Origin: Convolutriloba macropyga
Taxonomy: Eukaryota
DNA length: 64,000 nt
Assembly (NCBI RefSeq): GCF_964194025.1
Contig: NC_134473.1
Span: 10,726,001-10,790,000 of the forward strand
Direction: 5' to 3'
Below, in pieces: positions 10,438 through 43,000 of the stretch. Position 1 is the first letter of the stretch. Each line of letters starts with the position of its first letter. A program made the position numbers and the translations under genes. Below the pieces are notes generated by a model. The model made no database searches, was not told the DNA's origin, and saw only the letters and a program-made list of their open reading frames with translations.

Positions 10438-10452
10438 AAGGTATAAGAGGAA

Positions 10453-10900: not shown

Positions 10901-11038
10901 TACATAAATACATTACTGTTTATTGGAATGTAAACAATTTCAAACCCCACGCCAACATGTCTAGACAAGATAACAGCTGAACAAACAAATCCCCCCTCCC
11001 TACGCGTGTAAACAAATTTATACTCCTCTACGTCAGCT

Positions 11039-11730: not shown

Positions 11731-12225
11731 ATGGCTGCTGAATATTTAGAAATTGCAAAGACAAGTGAGCGAGGCACCCGAACTCTTGTGCGAATGTGTC
11801 ACAATTTTAAAAATATTGTCCTTGCAAACGAAAGCTATGATGACAAGACAGAATTGTGGCACACAAAAAACAGCATCATTCCTGTGAATTACATTGAACC
11901 AATACTCGATTATACAAAACAAAACGATTTATTCCAACTCACAAAAACGCCAGAAAAATTGTCACGACAAGAGGAGTCTCCATATGCTCCCCGATATTAT
12001 GGCTGCATTACTCCGATTCAAACAAGAAAGCAAAACGTGAAAAAATTGTCCAAAACACGAAAACTGTTTGCAGACTACGATCATGACTGCATTGAAATTT
12101 GGGAAAATCAACTAGGACAGCTAGAAGAAGTTGAGCAGATATCAGATTTTTGGAGTTTCGATCAATCTCAATCGCCTAGTGACATAAAAACTACGGAAAA
12201 AAAGTCTCCCTTTACTTTCCAATAA
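11731..12225 (+). CDS. Hypothetical Polinton protein
   Basis: 164-aa ORF with good ATG context. Confidence 0.5.
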   Translation: MAAEYLEIAKTSERGTRTLVRMCHNFKNIVLANESYDDKTELWHTKNSIIPVNYIEPILDYTKQNDLFQLTKTPEKLSRQEESPYAPRYYGCITPIQTRKQNVKKLSKTRKLFADYDHDCIEIWENQLGQLEEVEQISDFWSFDQSQSPSDIKTTEKKSPFTFQ

Positions 12226-23058: not shown

Positions 23059-26000
23059 ACTGTCGAACCAGAGGTAACAGAATTTCTAAAAGTCTAAACA
23101 TGCAGTTTGGGTTAATTTTTTTATTGTATTGTGGGATGTTGAGAATTTTTTGAAGGAAGATATTTATGTGAGTTTAAACTATTCTGCGTAGTGACTAAAA
23201 TGAAAAATTCAACACAGCGTTGGCTTATTATTGTCAGTAAAATTTACTAGGTGACATTTCACATCAGATCAAAGAATTGATTGTTGCACTTTGTTCGCCT
23301 TGTAGAATTTGTAATTTTAATCCCGTTGGTACTTCTGTGTTAATCTGAACGTGCTCTCGCTTGCACATACTCCCAGAAGCCACAGACTTGCTCTCTGCGG
23401 CTTCCAAACTAGCTTAATTAAAGTCTTTTAAAAATAAGATTTTGTGTGCACTTGTGCCATATTTTTGATTGTCTGCCAAGTTTTAGAAAGGGTTTACGCG
23501 TGGTTTGTCATCCTCGAGAAAGTTGTGGTCATAGGTTTCAGCTTGTGTTTAAAGGGGGTAGTATCTCGTCTCCGTTTTTTTGCCGAACCAACTAATGGCG
23601 ATTTTAATGATATCTTTGAATTTAAGTGGAAGCAATCACATTTTCAACTGCATTTGTTAATCATAGGTGTTTGTCACTTAGTTTTTGAGATAATCTTAAG
23701 GATCGGACCTAGATTCAGATTCAGACCAAGATGCAGGCGTAGGTCAGGCCGAGAACAGATTTTCCTGATCTTGTTTGGTTGGCTGAAATAATGTGAATAG
23801 TATAGCAAAATTCTTGCTTTGTCAGGAGACAGTCCCCCGTGACGATCCACGAGGAAAAATTTTTCGGTACAGTGTTCTTGGTTTGTTCAGGGGACAAACT
23901 TTCTGAAATTTTAGGGGAAAATCTCATAATTTGGCTTAATTTGAACGTGGAAAAGAACTTGCACGATAAAAAATGCACCTCAAAAAATAGAAATTTTAAT
24001 CTTTTGTCTGAATAGCCTCCTATCGGGTATTTACTGAAATTTAAAAACTAACTTGTGTCTGTGTGTGATAAAGAGAGCGGCAATGTTTTGTTAAATTTCG
24101 AAACTAAACAGAACATTACTCCAATTACGATGGTTTTATACCCTATTTGTTTTCAATTTCATAGTTTTATTGACCAGATGTTACTCAGAAAAATATGTGC
24201 GAGGAGATTATAGAAGTCTAATAAAAAAGAATTGCTTTTGACGTCAAATTCAGCCTTAAAGGTGAAATAATAGCAAGATTGTGCAAAATGAAGACAAAGT
24301 TTGTAAAATTGTCAGTAATATACGAAAGGATATATTATGTTGCGACGATCGTGGAAAAGGTGTTTTCAAAATGTGCAGTAAAACAATTCATATACATTTG
24401 TGAAAAAAGGACAGTTTAACTTTAGAAAAAATTCCATATTTTTTCTATCAAATATAGTCAATTTTGGATAAGTTTATGGAAAAATGCACAAAGAAGACTT
24501 GAGTTACGTAAAAACTTGTGCTTTTTAATTAAAGTAAAGCAAGGCTGTTAAACTGTCGAACCTGAGGTAACAGAATTTCTAAAAGGCTAAACATGCAGTT
24601 TGGTTTAATTTTTTTATTTTATGGAATGTTGAGAATTTTTTGAAGGAAAATATTTGTGCGATTAAACTATTCTGCGTATAGTGATCAAAATGACAAATTC
24701 AACACAGCATTGTCTTATTATAGTCAGTAAAATATTCTAGGTGGCATTTCACGGCAGATCAAAGAATTCTTTGTTGTTTTTTGTTCGCCTTTTAGAATTT
24801 GTAATTTTAATCTCATTGGTACTTCATAATGTTGTAATCTGAACGTACTCTCACTTGGACATACTCCCTGAAGCCACAGAGTTGCTCTCTGCGGCTTCCA
24901 AACTAGCCTAATTAATGTCTTTTGTAAATATGAGGTTTTGTGTGCACACGTGCCATTTTTTTTGTCTGCCAAATTTTAGAAAGGGTTTTCGCGTGTTTTT
25001 TATCTTCGATAAAGTTTTTCTCATAAGTTTAAGTTTTTGTTTAAAAGGAGTAGTATCTCGTCTCTATTTTTTGCGGAACCAACGAAAAGCAATTTTAATG
25101 ATTTTTGTTTTAATTTAAGTGGAAGCAATCGCAATTTCAATTGCATTTTTTAATCATAGTTGTTTGTCATTTAGTTTGTGAGATAATCTTAAGGATCAGA
25201 CCGAGATTCAGATTCAGACCAAGATTCAGGCGTAGGTCAGGCCGAGAACAGATTTTCCTGATCTTGTTTTGTTGGCTGAAATAATGTGAATAGTATGGCA
25301 AAAGTCTTGCTTTGTCAGTAGACAGTCCCCCCGTGACGATCCACGAGGAACATCTTTTGGGTACAGTGCTCTTGATTTGTTCCGGGGACAAAATTCTGTG
25401 ATTAAGTTCTTGGTTTTTGTAAGATTTTGGTCTCACTCTCAAAGATGACTTCCTAACTCTAAAATTGACTTTTCTTTATTTCAATGCAAAGAGATAAGGT
25501 CAAGTCAATGTATATCACTCTAATTGAAGGTTATTTAAGAGCAGCTAATAGAAACAGCAATAAGTTAGACATATTCTTAATCAACATTTAAGATCTCAGC
25601 CCTTCATAAAAAGACAAATTTCTTTTTTAGTCTGTCTTTTTTAAATCTTTTTGAGACTGCAGGAAACTATTGCTGCTATTTTCTGGCAATCTGCCAGCTA
25701 TATTTAATTTGATATTTTTACTGATCATATGTTGCCCAGATTAGTGGGTTCTCGCAAAATTCAAATCTAATTAAAAATAATCTCAAAGGCTCCGCGTGGA
25801 GATTTTTTGTGTCTGCTAACCAAAGGAGGATTTGCAATAAAGCAGTTCATATACCTATATTTTAATAAAGGACCTTTGAAGTGGAAAAAGATGCGTTTTT
25901 TGCAATCGAAAATGGCTATTTGTGGACAATTTTGCAAAAAAATTAATAAAAAGCATTGAAGCTACGCAAAAACTATTTTGCCTTGTTGATTAGAAAAGGA

Positions 26001-26385
26001 AAGCTGTTAAACTGTGTAATCAGAGGTTTGTTCGTTATTGTACACGTCTAAAAATCCATTTTAAAGTAAAATTGTGGTGAAATTATAGAATTTTAAAAAT
26101 TTAGCGGGAAGAATTAATGTGCGAATGAACTCTACTGCGTATTGTGATCCAAATGAAAAGTTCAACACAGCCTCGTCTTTATATACTCGGTAAACAATAC
26201 TAGTAAATATATCACAGCAGATCAAACAATCGATTGTTTTTTGTTAGCCTTTTAGAAAGAAACATTATTATATTAATCCCGGTGATACTTCAGTAAGTGT
26301 TAACCTGAACGTGCTTGCGCTTGATGCAGACTTGCTCTCTGCGGCTTGCAAAATAGCGTAATTGAAATCTTCTGTAAGATTTTTT
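23059..26385 (+). repeat. Tandem diverged copies of a ~1.5-kb repeat (units start ~23059, ~24552, ~26010)
   Basis: GCTGTTAAACTGT.., TTCAACACAGC, TCTCTGCGGCTT and GATTCAGATTCAG recur at ~1.5-kb period. Confidence 0.85.
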
Positions 26386-26399: not shown

Positions 26400-27735
26400 T
26401 TAATTTTGATCGCAAAATTACGCTGTTTTCTCAAGTTCAACTGTCCTATCCTAACATATATGTACACGAAGTGCTCTACCGCACATTTTCAAAACACTCT
26501 TTCGGTAACTGTCGCAACTTTTTATATCCTTTTGGGCATTACTTTTGTCATCTTCACCTAATTCTTATCTTGATTTTTTGCAAAGTTGCTGTTATTTTCT
26601 CCTTTAAGGTCGGGGTTGATGTAAAAAGCTTTCTTTTGGCCGGCAGATAGAATAATTCTTCAATTGAAGCCGTGGTACTTAATCTTGATTAGATTTATAA
26701 TGTGCTCGCACACCGTAGTCTAGGTAATATCTGCTCAATAAATTTATCAATTTAAAATCAAATAGAGTCAATTTAAGCCGAAACATGCGAGGCTAATAAA
26801 ATTCACCTGTGAAGCCTTTCTAAAACTTTGCAGGCAGTCAGAATTTGTGCGAGATCACAAAAACATACACCTCGTGGTACGTACGAAGTAACAGAAAGAC
26901 TGATCCTTCTACTATTTCGGCAACCAATACCAGAAGGCGACGGTACATGCGCACAAAAACCTTGTTTTTACAAAAGTTTTCAGTGACGCAGAGAGCAAAT
27001 CTGTACCAAGCGGGAGCGCGTTCAGATTCCCACGTACTGAAGTAACAACCTTTCCTTCCAGAAGGCGAAGAAAATGCAACAACCAACTGTTTGATCTGTG
27101 AAATTCCACGCAGTTTTTTACCGAGTATATAAAGACAACGCTGTTTTGAACTTCTAATTCTGATCACAGTACACAGAGTTCGCTCGCACTTTAATTCTTC
27201 CCGTTAAAATTTCCTCAACGTTTTGTAATACTACCAACATTTTACCCCCAAATGCTTGTGTAAACTTGTATAATTACCTAGAAACCTCTGGTTCCACAGT
27301 TTAACAGCCTTCCGTTATTGTTTTAACACAATGAATAACAGTTTTTAAGTAGATGTAGATTTATCTTTTTTTTGCATTTTAATGCATCATATTGTCCAAA
27401 ATTTACCGTTTTGATCGCAAAACACACAATTTTTTTAAGATTAAATGTCCTATCTGAACATATATGCATATTAATTGCTTTACCGCACTTTTTCAAAGCA
27501 TTTTTTTTGGGATTATCGCATTATTTTATCATTTTACGCATTACTTTTGTCAATTTTACAAACATTTTGTATTCATTTAGTACAAACTTGCTTTTCTTTT
27601 CTCATTTATGGCTGACTTCGACTTTAAAAGCAATCTTTTTGGCTAGCAGATACAATAATTCTCCAGGTGGAGCCTTGGTGTTTAATTTTTATTTGATTTG
27701 TAATCTGCGCGCATCCACTGATCTGGATAACATAT
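26400..27735 (-). repeat. Inverted copies of the same repeat family (continues at 33262-33420)
   Basis: Reverse complement of 27281-27310 is AGGCTGTTAAACTGTGGAACCAGAGGTTTC; 33262-33400 matches the reverse complement of ~505-645. Confidence 0.75.
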
Positions 27736-28074
27736 TATGATAACTTTCTTCTTAGTTTGCTTATGCCTTTTCTATCTTTTTAGAGGCGGCTGTGTAGGTG
27801 CTAGTGCCAAGTGCTATATTGTATGATGACAGAGTTATCGTTGCAATATCCTTTCTAATAAAGGCTTTTAATTGTAAGTTTTTGCTAAATGCTATTCGGA
27901 GCGCGGGTGCGGTAAAAACGCTCTTTTTCTGCTACAAGTTTTACATTCAAGTATTTTGGTAAGCAACTGAACTGTTCTGAGCAGAATCGTCTGTCTGAAT
28001 TGCAAGATAATAAGTGCGTGCTGTATAAATTTACAAAAGTCTTTTTCAACCAATCAAAATTCAGCATCGTCATA
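27736..28074 (-). repeat. 3' LTR (TATGA...TCATA)
   Basis: About 13 substitutions versus the other LTR by manual comparison. Confidence 0.92.
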
Positions 28075-28309
28075 TTACGGCTCTTTAGAAAAAGCGGAGG
28101 CGATGGGTTTCGAACCTTTAATCTTATGATTATAAACAGGGTTGCCTAGTGTGCTGTGCCAAGTGGGTCTTGATTAGTGGTGTTGACAAAGTCAGGGGAT
28201 TTACTGGGCTAATTAATTATAAATGGAAAGCAACATTAATAGTGGTTTTTTCTAAGTTTTTATTGAGTATTCTAGATCAAAATGCTGGAAGTTTATTTTC
28301 TGTTTGCTC

Positions 28310-28857
28310 TATTTGGCCTCTTGTTTTCTCATCTGATGTATGCGAAGAAATTGAACTGGTGAACGCGACTGCTGTATGTTCTGAAAAAATACTACATTCC
28401 GCGTTGGCCAAGTGGATGTGAGTTTCGTGCCATATCGGAGCCATATTTGTCCAGTTGGTGATGGTGGGATTGAAGATTTGTGTCCTCGATTCTTCCAAGT
28501 TTTGCAATGATGTTCGTGTTGGTCGTGGCAGGCATAGTACGCATGCAGTAGAAAAGGCGTGCAGTTTTGTAGAAAAATAGATTAGAAGTTTCTAATGACA
28601 TAGTGATGAGGCTGGATGTGTAGATTGAGGGCCTCCTGACCGCCCACAACTCTCCTTAGGTGAGGCATGAGTGTGCTTCTTCTCGGTATCAGGGCTGTCT
28701 TCCTCAGAACGTCGAAGTTCGTGGGCTCGCCCTGCCAAACGTAGGTGATTTGCACGTAAGTGCGGTAAATTGGTGTCTCCTGTATGCCCACTTTGATTAG
28801 CAGGGCGGGCCTGCCGTCGAATGAGAAGTGTTGTGGGGGGTCAGGCTGATAATTCAT
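28310..28857 (-). pseudogene. Unknown cargo ORF of the LTR element, one internal stop at 28582
   Basis: The frame stays open about 90 more codons after the stop and includes a His/Cys cluster; end approximate. Confidence 0.4.
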
Positions 28858-29400
28858 TAGTTGATGTGCTGACGTGTTCTTCGCTGTTGAAACTGGGACT
28901 GAATAGATAGTGATGAATATTTTCTATTTTTGCTGAGTGAGGTTAAAGTGTGAGGCCGTTCATTAGATTTGTATCAGTGTGACAGTTGTTTGATAATCTC
29001 TTCGGGTTTATTTGCATTTTTCCCAGAAAGATTAATGTAGTAGTAATCTGTCAAGTGGCAGTTCCATTTGCTCCATGTTGTGAGGGGAGTGAAGTAATAA
29101 AGTAATTCCCTCGGCATGGCAGTAAATGGCAGTCACTAATGGAGTTTTCGGAAGTAATTCCCTCGGCATGGCAGTAACTGACAGTCACTAATGGAAGTTT
29201 TGGAGGAGAGTAAATTGAGAACAGTGTGACTGACTGCTCTTTTGATAAAGTTATTCAGAATACGTTTACTGCGAAGAGGTCAAATTTTAATAGCGGCGTT
29301 ATTCATCGACTGTTGGATATTTTATCGAAGCGTTACAAAAAACGATTAATTGTAATAACGAAGAGACGGGATATTCTATTTTATCAAAGTATGGACACTA

Positions 29401-30591
29401 AAAGGTTCGTTAATTACTTATAAGAATTTAGGATTTGATAGGCTGGCATTAATATTTTTTGTAGTTTTAAGCAGAATTATCGTGTTTAGAACGACACGAG
29501 GCAGACAAGATTTGCTAATCGAAATGAACGAGTTCAAACATCAGTACTACGATTGGAAAAAATTAATAAGTCTCGGATGGAAAGAAGTGGAGACAGTCGA
29601 CGGGCGGGGTATTAATTGTTGGAACTCCTTAAAGAATAAGTTAACTATAGACGGTAAAGGGAGAGTGGTTGGAGAGAATGGTTGGCCGAAGGTACCATTG
29701 GCAATAAATAATGAAAATATTGTGGGATTACAAGAAAGTTTAATAGAAGGGTTCCGAGGCTGTAAAGATCAGGGTGATGTGTATAATTATGCTAGTAAAT
29801 TAAATTTGGAGAATGGTGATAACAGGTTGTATTAAGAAGTTGGGTCGTATGCTGGTTTGTGTAATTCAATAGGTTGGACGTTTTGTGTGGATGGTTTGAT
29901 GATTGGTGTTTTGCCTGATGGTTTTACTGGTGTAAGGAGAGATGCAATGGTACAATAGAATGAGTGGTGGACGGCGGCACATGTTGAGATTGGGGGGAAT
30001 GATAGTGTTTCGAAAACGCCGTGTGGTGAAAAATTGATTCTGATTTGTGGAAGTTATCAGACATCAAGGGATTTTAATAATGTTATGGGTACTCCGCAAT
30101 ATTTTATGGATTTAATTAAGAGGGGTCCTTCTGCAGGTGGTTTGGAAAAGGATGTTTGGTTTTTCATTCCGACGAAAGATAATGTAATGTGCCAGCCTTC
30201 GTTGTGTGCGCATGCTGTTTTAACTTTTACAAGAGGCTTGTCGTTAGTGACTGGCTGGGAGGCGCGTGATCAATCGAATCAAGTTGTCGATCGGACTTTG
30301 GGATCGTTTGCTTATGGTGTTCGTAAAGGGGTGGTGAAAAGAATTGTAATATCAAATAACAAAAAGGCAGTGTTAGACTGGGCGAAAGAAAGAGAAGTAT
30401 CAACTGGCGGTGGTAGTGATGTGACTGAGCATGTGCAGAGTTTCTTTAATAGTGGTATAATTTTAAAAATATATAACAAACGAGGTAATCGAAGAAAATG
30501 GGGTGGGAAACGGGAAACGAAAACGCAGTCGAACGACAACGAGAATATTGTGTATTCGTTTCTTCCTCCAAAGGATCCTTCAATGGAGTAA
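29401..30591 (+). pseudogene. JmjC-like 2OG/Fe(II) dioxygenase, in-frame stops at 29833 and 29956; 5' end uncertain
   Basis: WWTAAHVE (HxE), GEKLILI, QPSLCAHAVLT (distal His) and SLVTGW, all in one frame. Confidence 0.7.
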
Positions 30592-31182
30592 GTGAGTTGT
30601 TCAACTTTTGTTTATTGAGAATTTTGTAGGGTTGGAACTATACTGCCAGGTTTTTTTTTTACTTTTTTTGAGATTTTGTTGTTTCGTGTCCGTGCCCTTT
30701 CAAAGTATGTTGAAAGGATTGTTTTTGGTTGATACTGAGCAATCGGTAAGGGTCCTGTCTGTGTTATTTTGGTTTTGTTCTGGAGAAAAAATTGATGTTT
30801 CGTGAGTTTTTTATCGTTATTTTGCAGAGTCGTATGTAGTGTAAGCAATTATTATTTTGACTTTCAATCGCGTGCCCTTCGAAGTGATAAGAAGGTGGGA
30901 GGTTAAATTTTGCTGGTAATGGTTGGAAATAGTTTGTTTAATAATAGTTTGCTATGTTAGTGGTGCTCGCGCATTGTGCTCACGAGTTATGACGAGTAAT
31001 TTTTTTTGGTTCAGAAGTAAAATTAAATTGGTAAGAAATTGAAAATAAGAAGAGGAGGCGTTACATTTGAATAATTTGCGGTGTTTATAAAATAAGTATT
31101 TCATGAAAATAATTGCGACTCATGAGAAAAAAAGAATAAAAAAATTATTTTGGATAAAAAAATTTAAAAAATTTATTCAAGT

Positions 31183-31530
31183 CTAAGTGAATACACCGAT
31201 GCCAACAGGGTCAAACTCAATGGGGTCGTGAATGTCCATTTGAATAAAATCCCAGAATTGGTGGTTCAGTTGGGTACCTTGGGATGAAGTAATGAAGTGG
31301 TATACGTAGGTGTAATATTCCCAGGTTGTGTAGAAAAAACATTTTTTCGTGAAAAGGCCTGTATGGGAGTGTGCCCAGATCACGATGGTTCCATTTTGTA
31401 ATATTACATATTCATTGAAAAAACATTCCCTGTATTGGATCCGACTTCCACCCAAACGTTGATGTTGTGGTTGGTGTGTAATTTTGGGGCGATGTCTTCT
31501 GGGCCGACGTAGTTCCGGATTTGGTCCCAA
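31183..31530 (-). CDS. Unknown cargo ORF
   Basis: 115-aa ORF in a co-directional series; start uncertain. Confidence 0.4.
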   Translation of the reverse strand: MGPNPELRRPRRHRPKITHQPQHQRLGGSRIQYRECFFNEYVILQNGTIVIWAHSHTGLFTKKCFFYTTWEYYTYVYHFITSSQGTQLNHQFWDFIQMDIHDPIEFDPVGIGVFT

Positions 31531-31637
31531 ATGCTTGTAGTCATGGTTTTTAGGAAAATTAAAATTGATGAGGTGCTAGATTTTAAGATTTGGAAATATC
31601 AGGGAAAGAATAAGTAAATATGGTTTTGAAAAAGAAA

Positions 31638-31946
31638 TTACAGGTCAAATTCGCCTTCTAAAAGTTCTTCTTTGATATTTTGTAAGAAATTCAAAAAGGT
31701 AAGAAAATTTGGATGATCTGGTTCCAAAGTGATTTTTTTGTCTTGATTATTATCCAGGAAGTTAATCCAGAAGCATAATGTATTGCAGGGGAATATGAAG
31801 TTTTCAGAAAAAACTGCAAGTTTTATATCAAAATCAGTGAGAAAGTAAGCATAAAGTGGAAATTGGGTTGGAATTGGAGATATGTAAGGAAGGGTGTCTT
31901 CTGATTGGTCAATTGTGGTGAAAGTTGGGGTTGGTGGATAAGACAT
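31638..31946 (-). CDS. Unknown cargo ORF
   Basis: 102-aa ATG-initiated ORF. Confidence 0.45.
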   Translation of the reverse strand: MSYPPTPTFTTIDQSEDTLPYISPIPTQFPLYAYFLTDFDIKLAVFSENFIFPCNTLCFWINFLDNNQDKKITLEPDHPNFLTFLNFLQNIKEELLEGEFDL

Positions 31947-31992
31947 GAGACAAAAATTTTAATAGAATATGAATGCAAATATTTGAGGAAAT

Positions 31993-32382
31993 TTACATAG
32001 AGTCATCTGAGAATGGAATGGGTGATGTAGGAGAAATTGGAATATAATTTAATTCGGCTGAATTGTGGTCTGATGTAGGGTCAGGGCTTTCGGGACCTTC
32101 AGAAATTGTTGGTTGCGATGGTTCTATTGCAACTGGTTCTCCTTCTGAGTTAAGATAGAAATTCACATTACTATAATTATTTGTGGATTGTATGCATTCT
32201 AGAAATGTTTGCCATACGGCTGATGTATCATTCACTGTAAGGGGGATAAAGGAAATTGAATAAATATTGCTGATAATATTGTCCTGTTGCATGTTAATAC
32301 TAATTATTGCTTCACGATCTGTAAAAAATGCAATGCTGTATTCAGTAGTATAAGCTGGCTGGCCGTTGAATGCGCGGCTCAA
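31993..32382 (-). CDS. Unknown cargo ORF with Pro/Ser-rich tail
   Basis: 129-aa ORF; start uncertain. Confidence 0.4.
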   Translation of the reverse strand: MSRAFNGQPAYTTEYSIAFFTDREAIISINMQQDNIISNIYSISFIPLTVNDTSAVWQTFLECIQSTNNYSNVNFYLNSEGEPVAIEPSQPTISEGPESPDPTSDHNSAELNYIPISPTSPIPFSDDSM

Positions 32383-32904
32383 CTTTAATTCTGAAGTGAT
32401 ATACTGGATTCATTATAAAATGAAATAATGCAAAAGGTAAAATTTTAGTTGTAGGAAAATTGTTTAAGTCGTTTGAAATGATTTCCAAGTTTCTATCCGC
32501 GAAGAACTTGTAATAGGTTTAGAGAGTGAACAGTTAGCAATAAAGAGAGTTGCCGGTAATTAGCAGGCAGAAAGTAGTTTGAATGATTGATAGTGTTGCG
32601 GGGGGAGTGGGGGAAATTTGACATTTTGATTAATTGGGATTGTGGGGAATTATCCCTGGTTGGGTTGATTAGTATTTCATTATAGGATGTCATTGTGATT
32701 GATGGACAGTTCGCCTTCCAGGTTAATGGATTTCCTTCTTTTTCTCACTTTGACAGATAATTGATAAGTTTCCTTTGGGAGTTGTATCTTATTACTCCGT
32801 TGTTTAATGCGTCAGTATAAATTCTTTTTAAAAATAAATTCGTCGCTGGATAAAAAGGTAGGGAGCAAATCCCCGCCTTTATCAATGGAGGTTTAATTCT
32901 CTTT

Positions 32905-32922
32905 ATCCCATCTCTTTCGCCA
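32905..32922 (-). promoter_or_regulatory. Primer-binding site (tRNA 3' end, Ser-like)
   Basis: TGGCGAAAGAGATGGGAT immediately internal to the LTR. Confidence 0.75.
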
Positions 32923-33261
32923 TATGATAACTCTCTTCTTAGTTTGCTTATACCTTTTCTATCTTTTTAGAGGCGGCTGTGTAGGTGCTAGTGCCAAGTG
33001 CTATATTGTATGATGACAGAGTAATCGTTGCAATATCCTTTCTAATAAAGGCTTTTAATTGCAAGTTTTTGCTAAGTGCTATTCGGAGCGCGGGTGCGGT
33101 AAAAACGCTCTTTTTCTGCTATAAATTTTAAATTCAAGTATTTTGGTAAGCAGCTGAACTGTACTGAGCAGAATCGTCTGTCTGAATTTCAAGGTAATAA
33201 GTGCGTGCTGTATAAATTTACAAAAGTCTTTTTCAACCAATCAAAATTCAGCTTCGTCATA
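32923..33261 (-). repeat. 5' LTR (TATGA...TCATA)
   Basis: Direct repeat of 27736-28074. Confidence 0.92.
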
Positions 33262-35113
33262 GATATGTTCAAGAAAACTATCAAATTAAGAATGCTCGTG
33301 GATAAAAGCCTACGAAAATTGAGTGCAATTCTTTTCACTGTCGAAATTAAGCATTTTCTTGCCACTTTCTTCATCAAACCACTTAGTTTTGAAATTTCAA
33401 ATATCTGTTCTAAAAGGTTTTGAGTGATTCAGACTTGGAGTTTCTTACGGGTTTAATGTGAATCCGAAAATATAAAAAAGTGGGTCAGACATTTTGACGT
33501 AATACTAAAAATAATAGAGGATTTGAGTAGACGATAGAATTATACCGTTTATATCGACTGTACATAGTCTAGCTGAAGATAGTTTGCTGATGGATGTATT
33601 TGGCCGTGCTCTTTGTGTGTTTCAGTGTTGTACACAAATTACAATTATTACTGTTGTACTTTGGCAATGAATAAACCATATCAATGTTGTGAACTATTTA
33701 TTCGCTTCTTCTATTCCAAATCCAGTCAAATATTTATTACCAGTCTCAAATTGATTGACAGTTTGAATATTGTAAAACGGTACCTGGTATGAATTTATCT
33801 ATTTCTACTCACTTGCAGTATTTGTTGATTAAATGTTTGTGCCGGCTGCCACCGTCTATTTTGTTTTTACGAAAGCATCCCTGGGCGCTGTTTTATATTT
33901 CATACAATATTTCAATTCTCAGTTATATTTTTAAATTGAATGATGAGCTTAGTTTGGATTGTATTTTTAATTTGATGAAATGAGAAGGTTATAGTAATTC
34001 AAAATAGTGATTTACTTTTTCTTCTGCAACCAATTGATTACTGCAAAACGTTTTGAAACGTTTTTTTAGGGGGAGGGGGATGATGGGGGTATGCGTTTTG
34101 TTTATTGCTGGTACAACATAAAATGGTAAATTTCATTTCAAATCGTGGCCTTCAAGTGACAAAAATGCATCCATTCAGGTTTTCATAGTCGCACATTCAT
34201 AGATTTTATTGCCAACTTCACGAAACCATCTTTGGCTAAAGGTCACAAATGCGTAGCTTAGCGTATGTTGGACTGGATGGATTATAGTTATCGTTTTTGT
34301 TGCTTCCGAGGTTACTTCAATTTTTGCTGGCATTAATAACTGTCAGGTTGCCAAATTTTTTTTGCCAGATATTTGAAACTGTTTTGAGTGCAATTATTTG
34401 GTTAGGCTACTTGAAAAAAATGCTCTAGGCTGCTATCAAAAAAATTTAGAGTAGCGTCCTTTTTCACCAACAAAGATCCTCATCACTAACGGCTCTTCAA
34501 CAATTTGTGCTCTCAAAATTTTTTGCCGCAATTTTTGTCCTAAAGAAATGAAAATATCGACATATTTTTCAATTGAAAAATTGATTAAATCACTAAATGA
34601 CAATGTAATTTCCTGTAAAGCTAAAAATGCCCCATGTAATGTTATGGCTGACGGAAAGAAAAATTGTGCACAATTTTTCAGCATTATAATCTCTAAATTG
34701 TATTACAAAAATCGACAGTTATCTGGCCTAACTCAGTTTCTATTACAAATTAACACCAACTAGATTTTTTTAATGCAGAATAAATTGCAATCACGTGATT
34801 GAAGTACTAAATTTAATTATATTTGTAGATTTTGCAACGCGCTTTGAAAAGCATCCCCATCACTGCAACAGCGGATTTGCTCGTGAATGCTATTGGTGAG
34901 GTTAGAGGGGCACGCAGAATACGCAGCTGTTTCGAATATCAATTTACTGTTGTCTGATTATGGGTGGCAAATATACGTAGTAAATCAGCTCATATAAATA
35001 GTGTAAATTACCCGCCAAAGCTTGATCTGGATGTGTGAAATTAGCTCGGAAGTTAGCGCATTTGCTTTCTCTCTTTTAACTTTCGGAGTCATGCTGAAAC
35101 CCCTCCTTTCGAG

Positions 35114-38100
35114 CTAGGTTTCACCAAGAAGATATGCACGAAAATGAGAGTGTTTTCTTATTCCAAGCGATTTGGTCAGAATATCTGCAGGCAATTTTTC
35201 TGTAGTCAAATATGACAGTTCAAGTTTCTGGTTTTCTACCAGTTCTCGCACAAAGTGCAGTTTTATGGCAAAGTGTTTAGTTTTTCCATGATGCATTGAA
35301 TGCTTACTTAATGCAATACAAGCCTGATTATCGACAAAAATTTTCAGAGGTAGTTTACAGTAAATTCCTAAGTCGTCTAGAATTCCACTTAGGTGGATGG
35401 CTTCTTTACTCGCCTCAACAACAAAATTGAACTCTGCTTCCGCAGTTGATGTTGCTACAGTCTTTTGGGCCTTACAACCCCAACTTATTGCTCCAGACGA
35501 CTCACTTAACTTGAAACAAAAACCTGAAGTGCTCCTCCTATTATCTATTTTCCCGGCCCAATCCGCATCAGAAAAATTCAACAAATCCAGAACCTGAGTC
35601 TTACGGAAAGTTTAAGTCTGATTCATTGTTCCTCTTAAGTTTCTAAGAACACGCTTTGCTGCTTTCCAATGAATTTCTCCGGGATTTTCAACAAATGAAC
35701 TTAGTGCATTAGCAGTAAAACAAATATCAGGTCTACTCGACAAAGCTAAATAGTTAAGACAACCTATCAAACTTCGGAAATTAGTTTTGCTCATTCTAAG
35801 TTGCTCCTCACTCCCCTCCTGAGGGCAATCATTTTTTGAAAGTTTACAATTTTCTTCTAATGGTGTGCCAATTGGCCTACAATCGTTCATTTTGAAAGTT
35901 TCTAATATTTTTTCTGTATTTTTCTTGCCTAATTTTTTTTCCGATGAAGTCCTCTCAATTTTCATTCCTAAAAACCACGTCAATTTTGAATTGTCACTAA
36001 TTTTAAATTTCTTGGAAATTTCGGCGTAAAACCAATCACAAAATTTTCAGAAAGGCCACAAATTATTAAGTCATCTACCCACAAACAATTCTAACTATCT
36101 TTTCATCCTGCTTTTTTTATAAACCAACGTTCGTCATGAAATGAGTTAACAAATCTTAGTGTAATCAAGAAGGCCTTCAAAGTCAAAAACCAGTTTCTTC
36201 CAGATTGTTTCAAACCATACAAGCTCTTTTTCAATTTACAAGCAAATGGTTTTCCATTTTCATCCAAAAGTTCAAAACCTTCAGTTTGTTTAATGACTAC
36301 ATCTTCAATCGGAGCGTTTAGATAAGCAGTTTTTATGTCCATTTGTTTTAACTGATAATCGTTAGAAATAGCCAGAGACATCGAAAATTCTAATGGTTGA
36401 AAGTCTAGTTGTAGGTGAGTATGTTTCATAAAAATCTTTCCCGAAAACTTGGCTAAAACATTTTGCAACAAAACGAGCTTTATAGCGACATATATCACCA
36501 TCAGGACCGAATTTTGAAGCAAAATGCCATCTTCTTCCTACTTGTTTTTCATCACTTTTCACTAAGGACCAAACATTGTTTTCAACCAAAGAGTCGTACT
36601 CATTTTTCAATGCTTCAAACCAATTTGGATTTTGCAAAGCATCATCAACATTTTTTGGAAGAAGCAAAGGATCGATAGCCAGTTGACTCAAAAAAGAAAA
36701 TTCTTTTGAATGGTTATCAAAGTCTGCGACTAACTTTTGTGTTTTCTTCTGTTTAAAGTAAAATTCATTTTCATTAAATCTTACGTTTCGTGATTTCCGG
36801 ATTTTCAGTTCTCCTTTTTCGTCTTCAAACCCAATCAAATAACATTTACTATTATCAGAATTCCCAAGAAAAATTCCTTTTTTTGAGGTTTGATCTAATT
36901 TTTTGCGAAATTGTTTTTCAATATGCATAAATGCCACACAAACAAAAAGTTTGACGAAAGATAAATTAGGTTTTTCATTGTACATCAATTCAAAAGGTGA
37001 TTTCTCGAGAACTGAATGCAAAAGCATGTTTTTGACATAAAAAGCCATGTTCAAAGCATACGTCCAATACTTTTTGTCCAAGCAAGCGTTGTCTAAGAAA
37101 CAGCGAGCCATAGCAACAGAAGTTCCCCAAATTCTTTCAAATTTTCCATTTTCTTGAGGAGTATATGGAGCAGAGTTTTCAAAACGAATTCCTTGGTAGA
37201 AGCGCTTAAACTCATTTGAAATGTATTCACCTCCATCCGAAACTAAAGTTCCTGGTTTTCCAACATCAGCACAAAACTGTTTAAACTTATCCAAGACCTC
37301 GTCTTTTGTTTTCATAAAATAAACTTTTGAGAAACGACTGAAACTATCTACAAATCCAATGGCATAACAATGGCCATCAACGGCTTCAGGAGAAATTTTT
37401 CCTAAGACATCTGTATGCACAATGTCCAAAGTTTCTTTCGCTCTTGTCATGCAATCTTTGGGAACAGGCTGTTATTTCGACTTACTTAACTCACAAACTT
37501 CACAACACAAAATATTTGAATTACTTATTTTCATGCCCTCAACAATCTCTGGCAGACGTTTCAAATCAGCAAAATTGTTATGTCCCATCTTTTCATGCCA
37601 CATTTGTAAACTGTCAACATTGAAGCAATTTTCATTAGAACAAGGAAAAATTTTCCACACAAACAATCCATTTTCAACTTCAAAAGGAAACGAGACTTTA
37701 TTAAAAACAAGTTCAAGTTTTTCACCCAAAGAAACATCGACACCCGCTTCTCTAAGTTTTGAAACAGAAATTAAGTTTTTTGAGTTATCAGGTACAAATA
37801 AAGCATCTTTTAAAACAATTTTTTTCAATTCTTCATTGCTATTCTTAGCGAAAAACTCAACATCCCCTTTTCCTAATTTTGCAGAGTGCGTTTTGATGGC
37901 ATTGTGAATTATGCCCGAAAAATTTTCATCCAGGTTAGCAAAGATACTTTTATCTTTAATCATGTAGTTTGCTCCACCAGCGTCAATGATAAAATCATGG
38001 TGTTCAACACAATTCTCACTCGAGAAAAAGCTAAAACTTTCCTCTTCTTGTTCCTCCGATACTAAATTTTGACTTTCTTTCGAATTACTTTTTCGTTCAT

Positions 38101-38942
38101 TTTTCATTACATGGGATTCAAATTTTTTGTAAGTAAAACAGATCTTGGCAATATGTCCAATTTTTTTGCACTTAAAACAAGTTATTTTCGAATTAGGTTT
38201 CTCTTTGTTAGGTTCCGATGGTTGTGCACGACAAAATTTTGCAATATGCCCCCTCTTGTGACAATTAAAACAAGTTCGATCATTGGTAAAGAAAACGGAT
38301 TCTGATTTGTCTGTATTTCTGTCGTTGCGTTTCTCACTTTCAAAAATTATCAAATTACGTTTAATTTCATCCAAGGTTTTATCTTGACCATATTTTACCA
38401 GAGTACAAAAACTTTCAAATTCACGAGGAAGTGCCTTCAAAAGTATCGAGACAAACATTTTTTCACTTATTGACTCATCGACTTCGGAAAGGTTCAATTG
38501 CAGGTCCTCGGCTCTAGTAATATAGTCTACTATGCTTTCTTTATTGTAATTTCTCAAATTTGTTCAATCAGATATTAGTTTTTGTAAACGCGGCCTCTCA
38601 AAACTTTTAAGCCTCTTACACAACACGCTCCAAGCTTCAGATCCTTTTCCCCAATATGGTCGCAAAAATAAAACTGACTTCTTGTCGAGGCACTGGACAA
38701 GTTCATACCAAATGGCCATTTGTTTTTCGTCAAAAATCTTTTCCCTTTCGATCGGCTGCATCAATTTGCTCCTGTGAAGGTCGTCCCCTCAGCGTAGGTA
38801 TAAACTCCCTATATCCCACAGTGCCGTCAACAATTTTATTCAACTTCAAAACATACATTTGCGCCTCAAACTGTTCGGGAAAATAGACAAAGTCTTGTTC
38901 TTTGCCGCTGAAGAAAAGTTTATCAATTGTTTTGCTATTCAT
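35114..38942 (-). pseudogene. Copia gag-pol polyprotein, multiple frameshifts/stops
   Basis: Two CCHC knuckles, IIDAG protease, WH..MGH/CEVC, HTD/SDGGEY/PQENG..ER, QMDIKTAYLN, SLYGLKQ, FSDADWAG, TKH. Confidence 0.95.
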
Positions 38943-39925
38943 GCTTAAGAAGTTGAGCTATTATTGTGTGTTAAGAAAACTTTTGACAATGAAACTTAAA
39001 CGTTCAACAGGGTAAAATTAAAGTTAAAAACCTGAGTGTACGCTAATCGAACAAACAACTTAGACAACTAAATTAAAGAACATCAAACAGTTCTTTCTTT
39101 TTTTCAGACCTTAAGCACATAAAAGCTATGTTTATAAAACGAAGTTTTTTTCTTTCAACAAAACATCTTAATTTTAAAAGCAAAAGTAATTTAGATTTTG
39201 GAAAACACACATAAACGTCTTTTAAAAGTAAAACTATTGGCCACCAGACACCTTTTATTTATGAAACCTTTCGACCTCTACTTAAAAATTTTTAATAGCA
39301 AAGCAGAGTCTGCAAAAAAAATCGTCAATAAACAAAATAAAAAATTTGTAGAAAGCAGTGCTCTTCAAAAGCTATATGAGAAAATCTGTCTACTTAGTAT
39401 AAAAGATGACCCATTTTGTTTGAGAATGTAGTATCCTTGACAAAGTTGGAGTGGACATTGACCAATATAGCCACTGATTCCCCCACTGCGACTAAGCACG
39501 ATGAGGACGGATCCTCCAGATAATTTCTCAAACACTAGCTTAAACTTTTCTCTTACGCATGGGCCAACTTTCGCAAAATTCTTCAAGCAAGTTTTCTATG
39601 CATCACCTTTTACTATGCTGTTACTATATTCAAGCTTATTCCAGGTTTTCATATGTTTCGAATGGTTTACACAATGTTACATGCCCTTCAGGGATTCTGA
39701 CCAAAATCGCTTTTACAAGTTCAATCTGTTTTACAGATAGATTTTACACCTTTTAATAAACGGACTCTTTTAATCGACCCTCTTTTGTTTCAATCGACCG
39801 TTTTTTGTTAAATCACGAGTGGTTTTCACACAGCCGTAATCAAGCTTTGACGCGCGCTGGAATCTTTAACTTTATAAATATCAAGCATAAAATTATTTCA
39901 CTAAATCAACAGTTTCAGAGTTTGA

Positions 39926-39991
39926 CTCTCTCTCACTGTCTTCTCCCTCTCTCTCTTTCTCTCTCTCTCTCACTCTTTCTGTGTCTTTATT

Positions 39992-40033
<42 letters not shown>

Positions 40034-40090
40034 CTTCTGTTCCTGCTTTGGCGCTCTCTTTTGATCAGGACACCCTCTCTTTCTCTGTCC
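39926..40090. repeat. (CT)n-rich tract in the Copia 5' leader
   Basis: Directly visible. Confidence 0.85.
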
Positions 40091-43000
40091 TTCGTTGTCA
40101 CTCAAGCAGGCCACCCTTCTCTTGTCTTATCTCACTTGTCAGTTTTCTGGGCCCATAACCTATTGGTGAGGTTAGAGGGGCACCCAGAATACGCAGCTGT
40201 TTCGAATATCACTTTACTGTTGTTTGATTATGGGTGGCAAATATACGTAGTAAATCAGCTTATATAAATAGTGTAAATTACCAGCCAAAGCTTGATCTGG
40301 ATGTGTGAAAATAGCTCGAAGTTAGCGCACGTGCTTTCTCACTTTTAACTTTCGGAGTCTTGCTGAAAAATGCTATAAAAGACATTCTTTTCGTACTTTT
40401 TAAAAATGTTTTTGGGAAATTTAGAAAATTTGCTTCTAAATATTGACAGAAGCTTGAAAACAGATTTTGCTGCTAGGACAGTTCAATACTCCAAATTTGG
40501 TTATTGGCAATTTGAGTTTTGTTTAACCAAAAACTGGAACAACTTGTACTAATTGATTCACAGATTTTTCTGTAGCTGAATTACAACGCTACAACTGGAG
40601 ACACTCAGAATCACATCTTTTTAAAAAGTTCTCAATAAGAAAAAGTATTTACTTACTGAGATTTGAAAATTATAGATCATAAGAAGATGCCTTACAAAAT
40701 CCTGAAAAGATATGTTAGTTGCTTCATAAGATACTTTTGTGCCTATGTTGCTCGTTGAGAGAATGTTGTGTCGTGGCATAATCCGCGACGTGTGTTAGAC
40801 CTAGATTGCTCTCACTCAGAATTTGCTCTCGCTCTGTCACAAACAACAGCGATTCCCCGAGATTGGGGGTTTCGACCGTTCACTAAAAGAATAATTCGCT
40901 GCAACGCTTTTTTAAAATCGGGGGGAAACCTTAAAATGCTAAGTGACGGGTCTATAAATAAGAATAATTCTCGATTGAGCGCTGGTTTGTGCTCAGCGGC
41001 TGCTTTAATGGCGTACTGGGACTTCTAAAACGCTTTGTTTATAACGGTTCGTTGCAGAGGAGAATTCACTGTAACAACAAGCGAAACGGGTCGGCAGGGT
41101 TTTCAAAATATCTCCAGAAGGAGCCTTGATATCAGCGAGAAGATATCGTTTTTCAACATCTGGAGATAAATTAACTCTTGTGTATGCTGATGCTACTCTA
41201 TTCAGAGTCTGGTCATGTCTGGATATGGCATCCCGTCTATAGCAGACAACCACAATGTCATTGAGTTTACCGTGCTAAAATTAGAAAAGGGACACATTCT
41301 CTTGCAGTCATAGAATTCAACTACGAGTTGGTATGGCAGAATGATTTGTATTTCGTTTGGTGACAGATGTGTGCAGCTAAGCAGGCGCCCACGTGGTAGA
41401 CTCCTCAAAGAAATGAGTCTTGCTTTTTCTCTTGTAGACATTTAAGGCCTTTATTTGATATTCTTTCCGATTATATAAACTTCTTGAAGTATTTTTGCGA
41501 CCTATAATTTTTTTTGAACTTCTTGAAGTTTTTGAATTTTTTTTTGTGTATTTGCTGCAAGGCTAAATGTTTCAAGACATCGGAAGAAATCAGTGAAAAC
41601 CTGATATTCTGTGGAATTTTGACTACCGATTCTGTAAACCAATTTTTTAATGCTAATGACGAGTCAGCATAGACCGCCGTGACCTGCTGTCAAGATTAAC
41701 TGATGCCCATGCCCAACATGCTTATTGATATGATGGTTTACTAGGTTCAATTCATACAACGCGCAAACAACATCAGTTACTTTGTATTTGTATTTGGCTA
41801 TCTTTAGAATCGACAATAATGCCTCATTCGACACAAACAGCTTTGAGTGAGCAATCAAGCAGTCATTGGTAATGCTGTATAAATAGTAGCGTTTCACTTG
41901 GTGTTGCTCAGCTGATTTTTGAAATCATGTTACAAATAACAATTGGAAGTCTAATTGCAGAGTGTTTGATATATTGGCTAATGTGAATGGAGCCTGATGC
42001 AAAAAAATTAATTTTTATGGTAGCGATAACTTTTTGACATTTTTTAGAGTCCTAATAGTACTCGTATTCAAAAGAAAATTAACACTTCTTGCTAAAAATT
42101 CAGTTTGAACTGTTCATAACCTATCCTGCACGTTGATGCATTTGTAGTTTAAAACGCTACAGAACACCATTGAAACCCTTAGTGTCTCTGATTTGTGAGT
42201 TGTGTTTATAACCAGTTTCTCGCAAAAAAACAATATATGTGTTTTTTTCCCAATGATTATGGTGGTTTCTGACCGAAAGAATTACGCTTTTTTTTACAAA
42301 TTATGCTCTATTGGCGCGCTTGATTTAGTTGTCGGCCGATTTTCGCCAGCTGAATTGTGCGTATTGAATACGTCATTCAAGGTAACTCATGAGAATATTG
42401 CTTGTGCTTCCAAAAAACTTTAAAGGTTTTTAATTCGTGCCTTATTTGGTTTTAGAAGGTTCAGAAGTATATCGGTAGAGTAAATTCTTCCCTTTAACGG
42501 GATCAGTACAGCTTTTTTTCGAAAAAGCAAATCGCGAAACTAGGAAATGTTTAATAGATCTACTGGAATTATTTAGTGGGTTATTTGATTGCGGTTGTGT
42601 TTGTTGTCGGAAACTCAGTGCATAATATACAAAGTTTTAAATTTAGTATTAAGTGTGGGTTCTTAGTGAAGACCAAGTGGCTATAATAACCAACACTTCT
42701 TGTTAGTTTTTTCGAGCAGCTCCAAATTTTTGGTAATACTCCCTAGAAAACTATCCTAGTTTCGATCAAGTTTGAAAAAACTGTTTTTGGACAATGATAT
42801 ATTTGTTGATCAAAGTGTTGAATGTACTAGCGCTTAAAATTTGCAATGAGCTGCTTGTATAACGTACCTGGGAGCGACTGAAGCTGTGCAGTATCGATAA
42901 GTTCCCGAAAAATTCCTTAAAATATTGGTAAAAGCTGATTGAAAACAACTATTGATAGAAAATCCTATCAGCCGGTCAAACTTTAACTGCAACTGTTACT

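Follow-up and report, generated by a model that had tools for sequence, protein, structure and literature searches.

Locus and Features

The window analyzed here is a 64,000-nucleotide stretch of the Convolutriloba macropyga genome (contig NC_134473.1, positions 10,726,001 to 10,790,000), and all coordinates below are positions within it. It contains an LTR element at 27736-33261, with a 339-bp LTR at either end and flanked by a 5-bp target duplication (CATAT/GATAT). Opposite to the element sense lies one long JmjC-like reading frame. The features of the element are the following:

27731-27735, no strand: target-site duplication, left copy CATAT; the flank matches an empty-site paralog at about 643-671 of the window
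27736-28074, minus strand: 339-bp LTR with TATG...CATA ends, the 3' LTR in the element sense, 96.2% identical to 32923-33261
28075-29523, plus strand: region between the 3' LTR and the JmjC ATG, defined by position only
29524-30591, plus strand: decayed antisense JmjC-like gene, first ATG at 29524 and final stop at 30589-30591
29971-29988, plus strand: T-A-A-H-V-E, a T-x-x-H-x-E motif (T 29971, H 29980, E 29986)
30025-30033, plus strand: G-E-K, within GEKLIL (K 30031)
30196-30225, plus strand: Q-P-S-L-C-A-H-A-V-L, then T, with the candidate distal metal-ligand His at 30211
30592-32896, minus strand: rest of the 3' internal region, which in full-length copies separates ORF3 from the JmjC gene
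32896-32897, no strand: internal deletion junction, with about 9.9 kb of the full-length element absent
32905-32922, minus strand: PBS-like sequence TGGCGAAAGAGATGGGAT, abutting the 5' LTR
32923-33261, minus strand: 339-bp LTR, the 5' LTR in the element sense, from comparison of the LTR pair
33262-33266, no strand: target-site duplication, right copy GATAT, with one mismatch to the left copy, from flank comparison

The empty site is seen in a related repeat copy at about 500-1029 of the window. Several open frames of about 100 to 130 codons, whose significance is unproven, are found on the minus strand of 30592-32896, and a tRNA scan of the window element found none. Two ORFs of about 360 amino acids at 36362-38557 were considered as a second JmjC gene and rejected; they are part of an unrelated Ty1/copia gag-pol.

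Translation of 29401-30591 on the plus strand gives a single frame interrupted solely by a TAA (29833-29835) and a TAG (29956-29958). Reading through these two stops joins the mechanically listed ORFs (29482-29835 and 30034-30591), as proposed in a first-pass annotation of the sequence, which had also recognized that the HxE motif falls in the gap between them and is hidden there. The positions it gave for TAAHVE, GEKLIL, PSLCAHAVLT, and SLVTGW (which comes after PSLCAHAVLT in the read-through protein) agree with the codon count. From its ATG, the frame has 356 codon positions counting the stops, 6 nt short of the intact 1,074-nt copies found elsewhere. The number of stops excludes a chance origin, since 29524-30591 (plus strand) has 2 in frame versus a mean of 31.8 and a minimum of 17 in 2,000 composition-preserving shuffles, and the remaining five frames over the same interval have 11 to 37 each.

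A Deleted Copy of an Autonomous Ty3/gypsy-Type Family

The first-pass annotation had described a gag/pol-less LTR element, which proved wrong for the family. Full-length members are autonomous elements of about 15.4 kb that code for gag, protease, RT, RNase H, integrase, and ORF3 on one strand (the minus strand in the orientation of the window). The JmjC gene, intronless and 357 codons long, runs antisense to these within the 3' internal region. The claims of the annotation that the gene has no introns and is antisense to the PBS-defined strand hold. Of four copies extended, three are full length and have gag and pol. The Pfam domains of the family follow the order zf-CCHC (weak), aspartyl protease (weak), RVT_1, RT_RNaseH/RT_RNaseH_2, Integrase_H2C2, and rve. 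Together with the 339-bp LTRs, the 5-bp duplication, the PBS-like sequence, and the gag-PR-RT-RNaseH-IN order, the family has the characters of Ty3/gypsy (Metaviridae-type) elements. Among the Pfam domains recorded in the family and in six related contexts (see below), those of the BEL/Pao type (Peptidase_A17, DUF1758/1759) are absent, and RT_RNaseH and Integrase_H2C2 are found instead. An intact copy on another contig (C3414) has a clean 5-bp target duplication (GCTAC) and carries TGGCGACAGAGATG in the place of the PBS-like sequence of the window copy. At some other loci, rearranged or tandem units bearing the JmjC gene are present.

ORF3 is conserved (about 650 to 720 amino acids). Its AF2 model (pLDDT 36) was too poor for a structure search; on language-model features only, it resembles the class-I fusion glycoprotein F and is possibly env-like.

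Compared with the full-length copies, the deletion in the window (about 9.9 kb) removed the leader, gag, PR-RT-RNaseH-IN, and ORF3, and the window copy is without gag and pol only because of it. A search of the 1.18-Gb genome at up to 3 mismatches gave a single occurrence of the junction sequence, and at that tolerance no further copies with this junction were found at other insertion sites. A non-autonomous LARD- or TRIM-like family would have many copies sharing the gag/pol-less structure, and here the junction is unique. The window copy is thus a single dead derivative, with a 9.9-kb deletion, two stops, and LTRs that are 4% apart.

Copy Number, Selection, and Relatives

We found at least 160 candidate copies of the JmjC gene in the genome, 40 of them scored at 93 to 100% identity, and the coding sequence is intact from ATG to stop in 21 of the 29 copies examined. 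Pairwise dN/dS is 0.32 to 0.36 (about 0.33), a value conditioned on intact copies and resting on 21 shared substitutions. By codon position, shared variants are distributed 4/4/13 versus 19/21/21 for singletons. These figures show a gene that is intact in most young copies and, judging from its substitutions, under purifying selection. The first-pass annotation had proposed looking for an intact ORF and a dN/dS below 1 across family copies to tell a family trait from a one-off captured fragment of a host gene, and both point to a family trait. The JmjC branch as a whole accounts for at least 600 candidate ORFs in this genome, spread over many element lineages.

Six additional contigs, drawn from three assemblies, show this antisense arrangement beside RVT_1, RT_RNaseH, Integrase_H2C2, and rve. 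For one assembly, the match to this genome is 100%; the proteins from the other two match it at only 34 to 39% at best, as does one protein from a separate sequencing run, the contig of which is too short for context. JmjC identity between diverged lineages is 23 to 53%. The identity matrices of JmjC, RT, and IN recover the same sister pairs (Spearman 0.73 to 0.81), so that JmjC similarity between element lineages follows pol similarity. The JmjC gene diverges much faster than pol, which could reflect weak constraint outside the active site.

The Pfam-detectable JmjC genes of the host lie at six loci elsewhere in the genome; hence, the gene of the element is not a recent host capture. With hhalign, the family profile gave no meaningful alignment to two host JmjC domains used as single sequences. 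Among the cluster members read, none carried a name in protein collections. The first-pass annotation knew of no animal LTR family built in this way, and in the literature we searched, no LTR element was found described as carrying a JmjC gene.

A Divergent JmjC Fold

Intact sister copies served to establish the fold and motifs of the window gene. For the protein of one such copy, the AF2 model (pLDDT 85.8, pTM 0.83) retrieved only JmjC enzymes among the top 50 Foldseek matches in the PDB (E values down to 2e-9), and the top matches in the AFDB cluster collection were mostly named JmjC proteins, the others being unnamed or differently named. The language-model neighbors of the protein are JmjC/Cupin_8 clusters (0.94 to 0.97). 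The best structural matches are the JHDM1-type KDM2A (VIA Z 14.8, 248 residues aligned) and KDM7A, PHF8, and PHF2 (14.4 to 14.6); over this group, 240 to 258 residues are aligned, covering the JmjC core and the helical domain that follows it. JMJD5 (14.3, rmsd 3.3) comes within 0.5 Z of these enzymes, and TYW5 (13.1), JMJD6 (13.0), and FIH (12.9) within 2 Z, all at 10 to 15% identity.

At the sequence level, the relationship is much more remote. No threshold match to Pfam was obtained with three pieces of the window gene, the intact protein, or 19 homologs, and nothing in the PDB was matched by sequence with the single protein or a profile of the 19 homologs. Two distant members match Pfam JmjC below threshold (E values of 0.01 and 0.045; 16.8 and 14.6 bits versus a cutoff of 24). 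A profile of 37 sequences reached only PHF8, ceKDM7A, and KDM7 in the PDB, each individually non-significant (E value of 0.06), and its alignment to PHF8 pairs TxxHxE with TDFHID, GxK with GEK, and HAVLT with HAVLT. We take the T and K of TDFHID...GEK in PHF8 to contact 2OG. The family is a divergent JmjC branch missed by current Pfam models. Of the checks put forward in the first-pass annotation, structure prediction and Foldseek gave JmjC, and Pfam gave neither JmjC nor Cupin_8 at threshold.

In the alignment of 19 homologs, T150, H153, E155, and K170 are invariant and H230 is near-invariant; across the 37 sequences, P225 and H230 are invariant. The five residues singled out in the first pass (T, H, E, K, and H) are thus those kept by the family and aligned with the PHF8 motifs, and the window copy has all residues of the H-x-E...H triad (29980, 29986, and 30211). 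By alignment, T-x-x-H-x-E...G-x-K...H-x-V-x-T match the Fe(II)/2-oxoglutarate ligand positions of PHF8/KDM7; the Thr of T-x-x-H-x-E and the Lys of G-E-K would bind 2OG, and the His and Glu of the former motif would be the first two metal ligands. The second metal ligand is Glu in the element protein, in contrast to the Asp of the KDM7/PHF8/KDM2A type. Fold model and motif alignment bear out the JmjC-like identity first suggested and support the prediction that the read-through product adopts this fold and resembles Fe(II)/2-oxoglutarate oxygenases.

The element gene encodes a minimal version of the JmjC fold, with the catalytic core, a C-terminal helical domain, and a basic disordered tail. 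In the structure alignment, residues 1 to 329 of the 357 amino acids correspond to the catalytic core alone, and no PHD, CXXC, F-box/LRR, or other Pfam domain was found beside the JmjC core. Unlike the KDM2/KDM7 enzymes, which are encoded by host genes, the element protein is encoded by a mobile element, has no PHD, CXXC, F-box, or other reader domain, and shares only 10 to 15% identity with KDM7/PHF8/KDM2A, without a Pfam JmjC match at threshold.

Comparison with Known Systems

Hosts silence mobile elements largely through histone and DNA methylation. To our knowledge, few element-encoded answers to silencing are known, such as VANC and the AlkB RNA demethylase of orchid gypsy elements. In plant LTR retrotransposons and complex retroviruses, the interval from pol to the 3' LTR can also hold an accessory gene that runs antisense to gag-pol, and as far as we know, these antisense ORFs generally have no recognized enzymatic fold.

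A close parallel is provided by the giant Ty3/gypsy elements of Phalaenopsis, which carry an ORF for an AlkB-type m6A RNA demethylase that its authors propose to counter host surveillance (PMC9289625). As here, a large Ty3/gypsy-type element has a fixed additional ORF of the Fe(II)/2OG dioxygenase type; however, the orchid enzyme is AlkB rather than JmjC, the host is a plant, and the ORF is close to plant RNA demethylases (PMC9289625), whereas the JmjC gene shows no such closeness to its counterparts in the host and has diversified along with its elements. VANC, from the VANDAL transposons of Arabidopsis, is also transposon encoded and rapidly evolving, and anti-silencing of its own family is proposed or shown for it (PMC5735166, PMC10398659), whereas for the JmjC protein such a role is a hypothesis. 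VANC comes from a DNA transposon, recognizes particular DNA motifs, and is no oxygenase (PMC5735166, PMC10398659). The "ancient errantiviruses," env-carrying Ty3/gypsy elements of invertebrates, have the same gag-pol-ORF3 organization and multiple young copies per genome, but their survey makes no mention of JmjC, antisense, or accessory genes (PMC13524379).

Proposed Role and Alternatives

The reading that best accounts for these observations, to which we assign a probability of roughly 0.8, is that the stretch is a decayed accessory-gene copy from a family of Ty3/gypsy-type retrovirus-like LTR elements. The most likely role of the protein, held at somewhat less than even odds, is that of a KDM7/PHF8/KDM2-like lysine demethylase that would erase repressive histone methylation on element copies and hence act as a counter-silencing factor. 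Transcription of the JmjC gene would start at a promoter of its own and would not depend on the LTR-driven genomic RNA; from its position only, 28075-29523 would have to hold this promoter. The protein would enter the nucleus through its basic tail and act as an Fe(II)/2OG oxygenase.

Histone demethylation is favored over other JmjC chemistry by the sequence profile, the only PDB matches of which are PHF8 and KDM7, and by the longest structural alignments (248 to 258 residues, helical domain included), which are to KDM2A, KDM7, and PHF8. The Z scores hardly separate the candidates, as those of JMJD5, TYW5, JMJD6, and FIH almost equal those of the KDMs, and the protein has no histone-reader domain. 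It is possible, although we doubt it, that the protein is a JmjC-type hydroxylase instead of a histone demethylase, its target being another protein (a host restriction or silencing factor, or the Gag or IN of the element itself) or RNA. For RNA, it would be TYW5-like or functionally parallel to the orchid Ty3/gypsy AlkB m6A demethylase, a documented case of an RNA-acting 2OG dioxygenase in a retroelement (PMC9289625).

Catalysis itself might be dispensable, and the protein might oppose heterochromatin as a non-catalytic scaffold. Epe1, a JmjC protein of fission yeast, has reportedly been proposed to work in this way. Papers on the non-enzymatic anti-silencing role of Epe1 lend this idea a precedent (PMC7192584, PMC6317313), but we consider it improbable here, since lineages that are otherwise only 23 to 53% identical share invariant or near-invariant metal and 2OG positions, a pattern that argues for retained catalysis.

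Two further explanations concern the element rather than the protein. With its two LTRs, PBS-like sequence, and target duplication but no gag or pol, the window copy could be taken for a member of a propagating non-autonomous family that carries the JmjC gene alone and is mobilized in trans, and the rearranged or tandem JmjC-bearing units at some other loci would fit; this is very unlikely given a deletion junction that has no second occurrence in the genome when up to 3 mismatches are allowed, and given three full-length copies with gag and pol out of four extended. That a non-autonomous LTR element trapped a one-off host JmjC fragment, or that skewed base composition gave rise to a spurious frame, might be suspected from the window copy alone, broken, without gag/pol, and in a strongly C-poor stretch, but is refuted, and its probability negligible, by the hundreds of copies in many lineages with most frames open, the purifying selection, the confident JmjC fold, the more numerous (not fewer) stops expected of C-poor DNA, and the host JmjC genes being Pfam-detectable and elsewhere in the genome.

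Returning to the demethylase, a fuller version of the proposal, which we offer tentatively and think unlikely to hold in every part, is that an old and diversified clade of env-bearing animal Ty3/gypsy elements, resembling endogenous retroviruses, encodes a fast-evolving KDM7/PHF8-like demethylase, expressed from an antisense promoter. The enzyme would erase repressive host methylation (H3K9, H3K27, or H4K20) from element copies and so counter heterochromatin or piRNA-guided silencing by catalysis, with host and element engaged in an arms race.

The copy in the window is itself dead, and what makes it valuable is the family to which it points. The large JmjC branch to which it leads escapes current Pfam models and gene annotation, and the gene has diversified across many retrovirus-like element lineages, with relatives in other organisms, represented by at least two other assemblies. 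A vertically kept, selected JmjC oxygenase of this kind would be a candidate enzymatic "eraser" on the side of the parasite, in an animal.

A broken frame for a predicted divergent JmjC-fold protein

The plus strand of the window carries a single long frame at 29401-30591, whose translation is interrupted only by a TAA at 29833-29835 and a TAG at 29956-29958. More stop codons are to be expected in this stretch because it is poor in C (11%), and 2000 shuffles gave a mean of 31.8 in-frame stops and a minimum of 17; two are found in the JmjC-like frame, versus 11-37 in each of the five remaining frames. The open frame is real and far past chance. The first-pass annotation had read through both stops to a set of dioxygenase residues, and the codons lie exactly where it had put them, with the HxE motif hidden in the gap separating two mechanically listed ORFs.

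Features of the JmjC-like frame (translation)
29524, plus strand: first ATG
29971, plus strand: catalytic-motif T
29980, plus strand: catalytic-motif H
29986, plus strand: catalytic-motif E
30031, plus strand: catalytic-motif K
30211, plus strand: catalytic-motif H
30589-30591, plus strand: final stop

The JmjC assignment, which had been proposed from motifs, found no match at threshold in Pfam, and a PDB search with the single sequence returned none; structure prediction and Foldseek bore it out. HMMER recovered 147 cluster representatives (69 at E<=1e-10), including full-length proteins at 23-35% identity, and two distant family members match Pfam JmjC below threshold. In a 19-sequence alignment (numbering of the intact 357-codon copies) P131, W148, T150, H153, E155, S161 and K170 are invariant and D159, G168, Q224, P225, H230, V232 and T234 are at least 90% conserved, P225 and H230 remaining invariant across 37 sequences. 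The AlphaFold2 model built with the 19 sequences is confident (pLDDT 85.8, pTM 0.83), with disorder limited to the final ~35 residues, a basic tail. Its best 50 Foldseek matches in the PDB are JmjC enzymes without exception, among them ceKDM7A, PHF2, PHF8, KDM2A, KDM7, JMJD6, TYW5, JARID1B, JMJD5 and FIH. VIA-align gave Z 14.8 for KDM2A (248 residues aligned), 14.4-14.6 for KDM7A, PHF8 and PHF2 (spanning model residues 1-329), 14.3 for JMJD5, ~13 for JMJD6, TYW5 and UTX/JMJD3, and 12.9 for FIH. AlphaFold-DB cluster matches are for the most part named JmjC proteins, at no more than 16% identity, and the language-model neighbours are JmjC/Cupin_8 clusters.

Searched against the PDB, the 37-sequence profile hit only PHF8, ceKDM7A and KDM7, at individually non-significant E values of 0.06-0.08. 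The profile alignment sets W-f-T-e-g-H-v-E over Y-T-D-F-H-I-D, G-k-K over G-E-K and H-a-V-l-T over H-A-V-L-T, so that the TxxHxE, GxK and HxVxT motifs align with PHF8, and the Lys stands 15 residues past the acidic ligand in both. The aligned Thr, His, Asp, Lys and His of PHF8/KDM2A are the residues holding 2OG and Fe(II). The element protein is a predicted divergent JmjC-fold oxygenase with its catalytic residues in place.

The window copy is a deletion derivative

Two LTRs bound a 5.5-kb unit around the gene.

27736-28074: direct repeat (LTR), 339 bp
32923-33261: direct repeat (LTR), 339 bp, 96% identical to the first

Their termini are TATG...CATA, CATAT/GATAT flank the unit at either side, and the uninterrupted insertion site is seen in a related repeat copy at ~500-1029 of the window. 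Adjoining the 32923-33261 LTR, in the position of a primer-binding site, is TGGCGAAAGAGATGGGAT on the minus strand; the sense strand of the element is therefore minus and the JmjC-like frame antisense, as had been claimed.

In this copy a post-LTR leader of ~26 nt, primer-binding site included, is fused straight to the final ~4.8 kb of the element. Allowing up to 3 mismatches, the genome has a single occurrence of this junction (32896|32897), which makes the window copy a lone product of deletion rather than a sign of a non-autonomous family that propagates. Its JmjC gene, with the two stops, is 6 nt shorter than intact copies and ~6% diverged from young ones, whose mean divergence among themselves is 1.5%.

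Base composition is strongly strand-asymmetric across the element (window 28001-34000 and the element copy L036): C accounts for 11-15% of the plus strand in the 3' region, and over the whole of gag-pol the sense strand is rich in A and poor in G, so the JmjC gene is spelled in a C-poor codon set. Several open sense (minus) frames of ~100-125 codons also recur either side of the gene (window 28075-32896; sister copies L001-L030). Since the copies are ~98.5% identical and the strand is G-poor, this recurrence alone is no coding evidence.

An autonomous Ty3/gypsy-type family

Candidate matches to the 1.19-kb stretch number at least 160 in the 1.18-Gb genome. The 40 scored are 93-100% identical, and 21 of the 29 copies examined have an intact CDS, 356-357 codons from ATG to stop: the JmjC gene is a family trait. 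Three of four extended copies run beyond the window equivalent of 32896 into sequence absent from the window; in one, ~15.1 kb separates the second LTR from the first, so that the whole element measures ~15.4 kb, and a clean GCTAC duplication (5 bp) flanks it.

Minus-strand order in full-length copies
Start: ORF with a weak CCHC knuckle, then a weak aspartyl-protease match
pol: RVT_1, RT_RNaseH/RT_RNaseH_2, Integrase_H2C2, rve
End: ORF3, ~650-680 aa, no Pfam match

This architecture is of the Ty3/gypsy type. Pfam matches, both here and in the six related contigs described below, speak for Ty3/gypsy over BEL/Pao carriers. The gene had been described as cargo of an element without gag and pol; the family is instead autonomous, with both, and the window copy is one dead derivative of it. 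Every full-length copy examined has a broken pol, the break sites differing among copies.

JmjC-bearing units were also seen in short tandem arrays at C6:30432533-30445665, C10:34077643-34090120 and C12:2294748-2300910 (L033) of this genome, with periods of ~4.1, 3.8 and 5.0 kb, respectively; they are perhaps derivatives of elements that arose by recombination or deletion.

Pairwise dN/dS, calculated between 17 distinct intact copies, is 0.32-0.36, below 1, and variants found in at least two copies fall 4/4/13 at codon positions 1/2/3, singletons 19/21/21. The former arose in replicating lineages, while the singletons are post-insertion decay.

Shared history with pol

A first look gave at least 600-750 JmjC-like ORF candidates in this genome, in many lineages of 25-45% mutual identity, most scored matches having no internal stop. 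In six further contigs, drawn from three assemblies (one of this species, 100% match), a homolog again lies antisense beside RVT_1/RT_RNaseH/Integrase_H2C2/rve and an ORF3 homolog. Proteins of the two other assemblies reach only 34-39% identity to anything in this genome, as does, at best, a protein from a separate sequencing run, on a 1.4-kb contig that shows no neighbouring genes.

The pairwise-identity matrices of JmjC, RT and IN contain the identical three sister pairs.

Sister-pair identities
JmjC: 53, 39, 41%
RT: 85, 77, 86%
IN: 86, 73, 96%

JmjC and pol identities are correlated (Spearman 0.73-0.81, on pairs that are not independent), and together with the shared pairs this makes the gene a long-time companion of these elements. 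Its rate of change is several times that of pol, yet the active-site residues are retained; in one pair, identity is 41% for JmjC, 86% for RT and 96% for IN (related contigs L039, L050, L051, L064, L065 and L066, with L012/L037). The order is pol-ORF3-JmjC(antisense) in the window family and its closest relative and pol-JmjC(antisense)-ORF3 in four of the five other contexts (L050, L051, L064, L065); in L066 the expected place of ORF3 holds nothing but short ORFs, possibly broken, and this contig is absent from the ORF3 alignment. Modules may to some extent have been exchanged between elements. Host JmjC genes detectable with Pfam occupy six loci elsewhere in the genome, and the element gene was not recently copied from any of these. 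Right after the integrase in L064, an ORF (12436-13203, minus strand) has a weak Macro-domain (PF01661) match and may be a further accessory domain.

ORF3 copies in the alignment
L036:1193-3226, minus strand
L037:598-2547, minus strand
L039:8007-10175, minus strand
L050:7325-9220, minus strand
L051:6986-9091, minus strand

Between lineages ORF3 is conserved, 36-38% of its residues being identical and many of its cysteines invariant. Its language-model features resemble F-type (class-I) fusion glycoproteins of paramyxoviruses and baculoviruses (0.97), a resemblance by which the family may be env-bearing; the AF2 model (pLDDT 36) is too poor to confirm the likeness.

Neighboring elements in the window

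34890-40318, minus strand: Ty1/copia element directly adjoining the JmjC element, LTR pair 96% identical; ORF matches Retrotran_gag_2, zf-CCHC, Pol_BBD, gag_pre-integrs, rve, SH3_retrovirus, RVT_2
5615-6331, plus strand: ORF, integrase core match
14567-15340, plus strand: ORF, protein-primed B-family DNA polymerase match (DNA_pol_B_2)
23059-26288: tandem repeat, 2-3 units of ~1.49 kb, 63-94% identity
47712-48392, plus strand: RVT_1 fragment of another retroelement (E 3e-8)

The Ty1/copia ORFs have no relation to the JmjC family. The region ~5600-16400 (plus strand) suggests a Polinton/Maverick-like element, and the left flank of the JmjC element is related to parts of the tandem repeat, in inverted orientation.

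Proposed function and known parallels

An autonomous retrovirus-like family bears an intact, selected antisense gene, with a JmjC-fold product and conserved Fe/2OG-ligand positions. The gene would have its own promoter within the ~1.4 kb separating the 3' LTR from the ATG, and it has candidate poly(A) signals 430-660 nt beyond its stop. The basic C-terminal tail would direct nuclear import, and the protein would be active as an oxygenase. Structure and profile both place it nearest to KDM7, PHF8 and KDM2, which remove H3K9me2/1, H3K27me2, H4K20me1 or H3K36me2. Since these demethylate histone lysines, the most attractive mechanism by analogy is that the protein strips repressive methyl marks from the histones of the element's own copies, to which we give a probability of roughly 0.4. 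The main rival, hydroxylation of protein or RNA, appears somewhat less probable, and a non-catalytic role is unlikely because the ligand residues are conserved.

Plant LTR elements reportedly have antisense additional ORFs, a parallel to the antisense JmjC gene. Giant orchid Ty3/gypsy elements, likewise comparable, have an ORF for an AlkB m6A demethylase (PMC9289625), and the VANC anti-silencing proteins of VANDAL transposons (PMC5735166) parallel the role proposed for the JmjC gene. The env-carrying Ty3/gypsy elements of invertebrates, surveyed recently, are a parallel to the family as a whole; the text of that survey mentions no JmjC, antisense or accessory genes (PMC13524379). A full-text literature search turned up no description of an LTR element with a JmjC gene, and none of the cluster members that we read has a name or accession.
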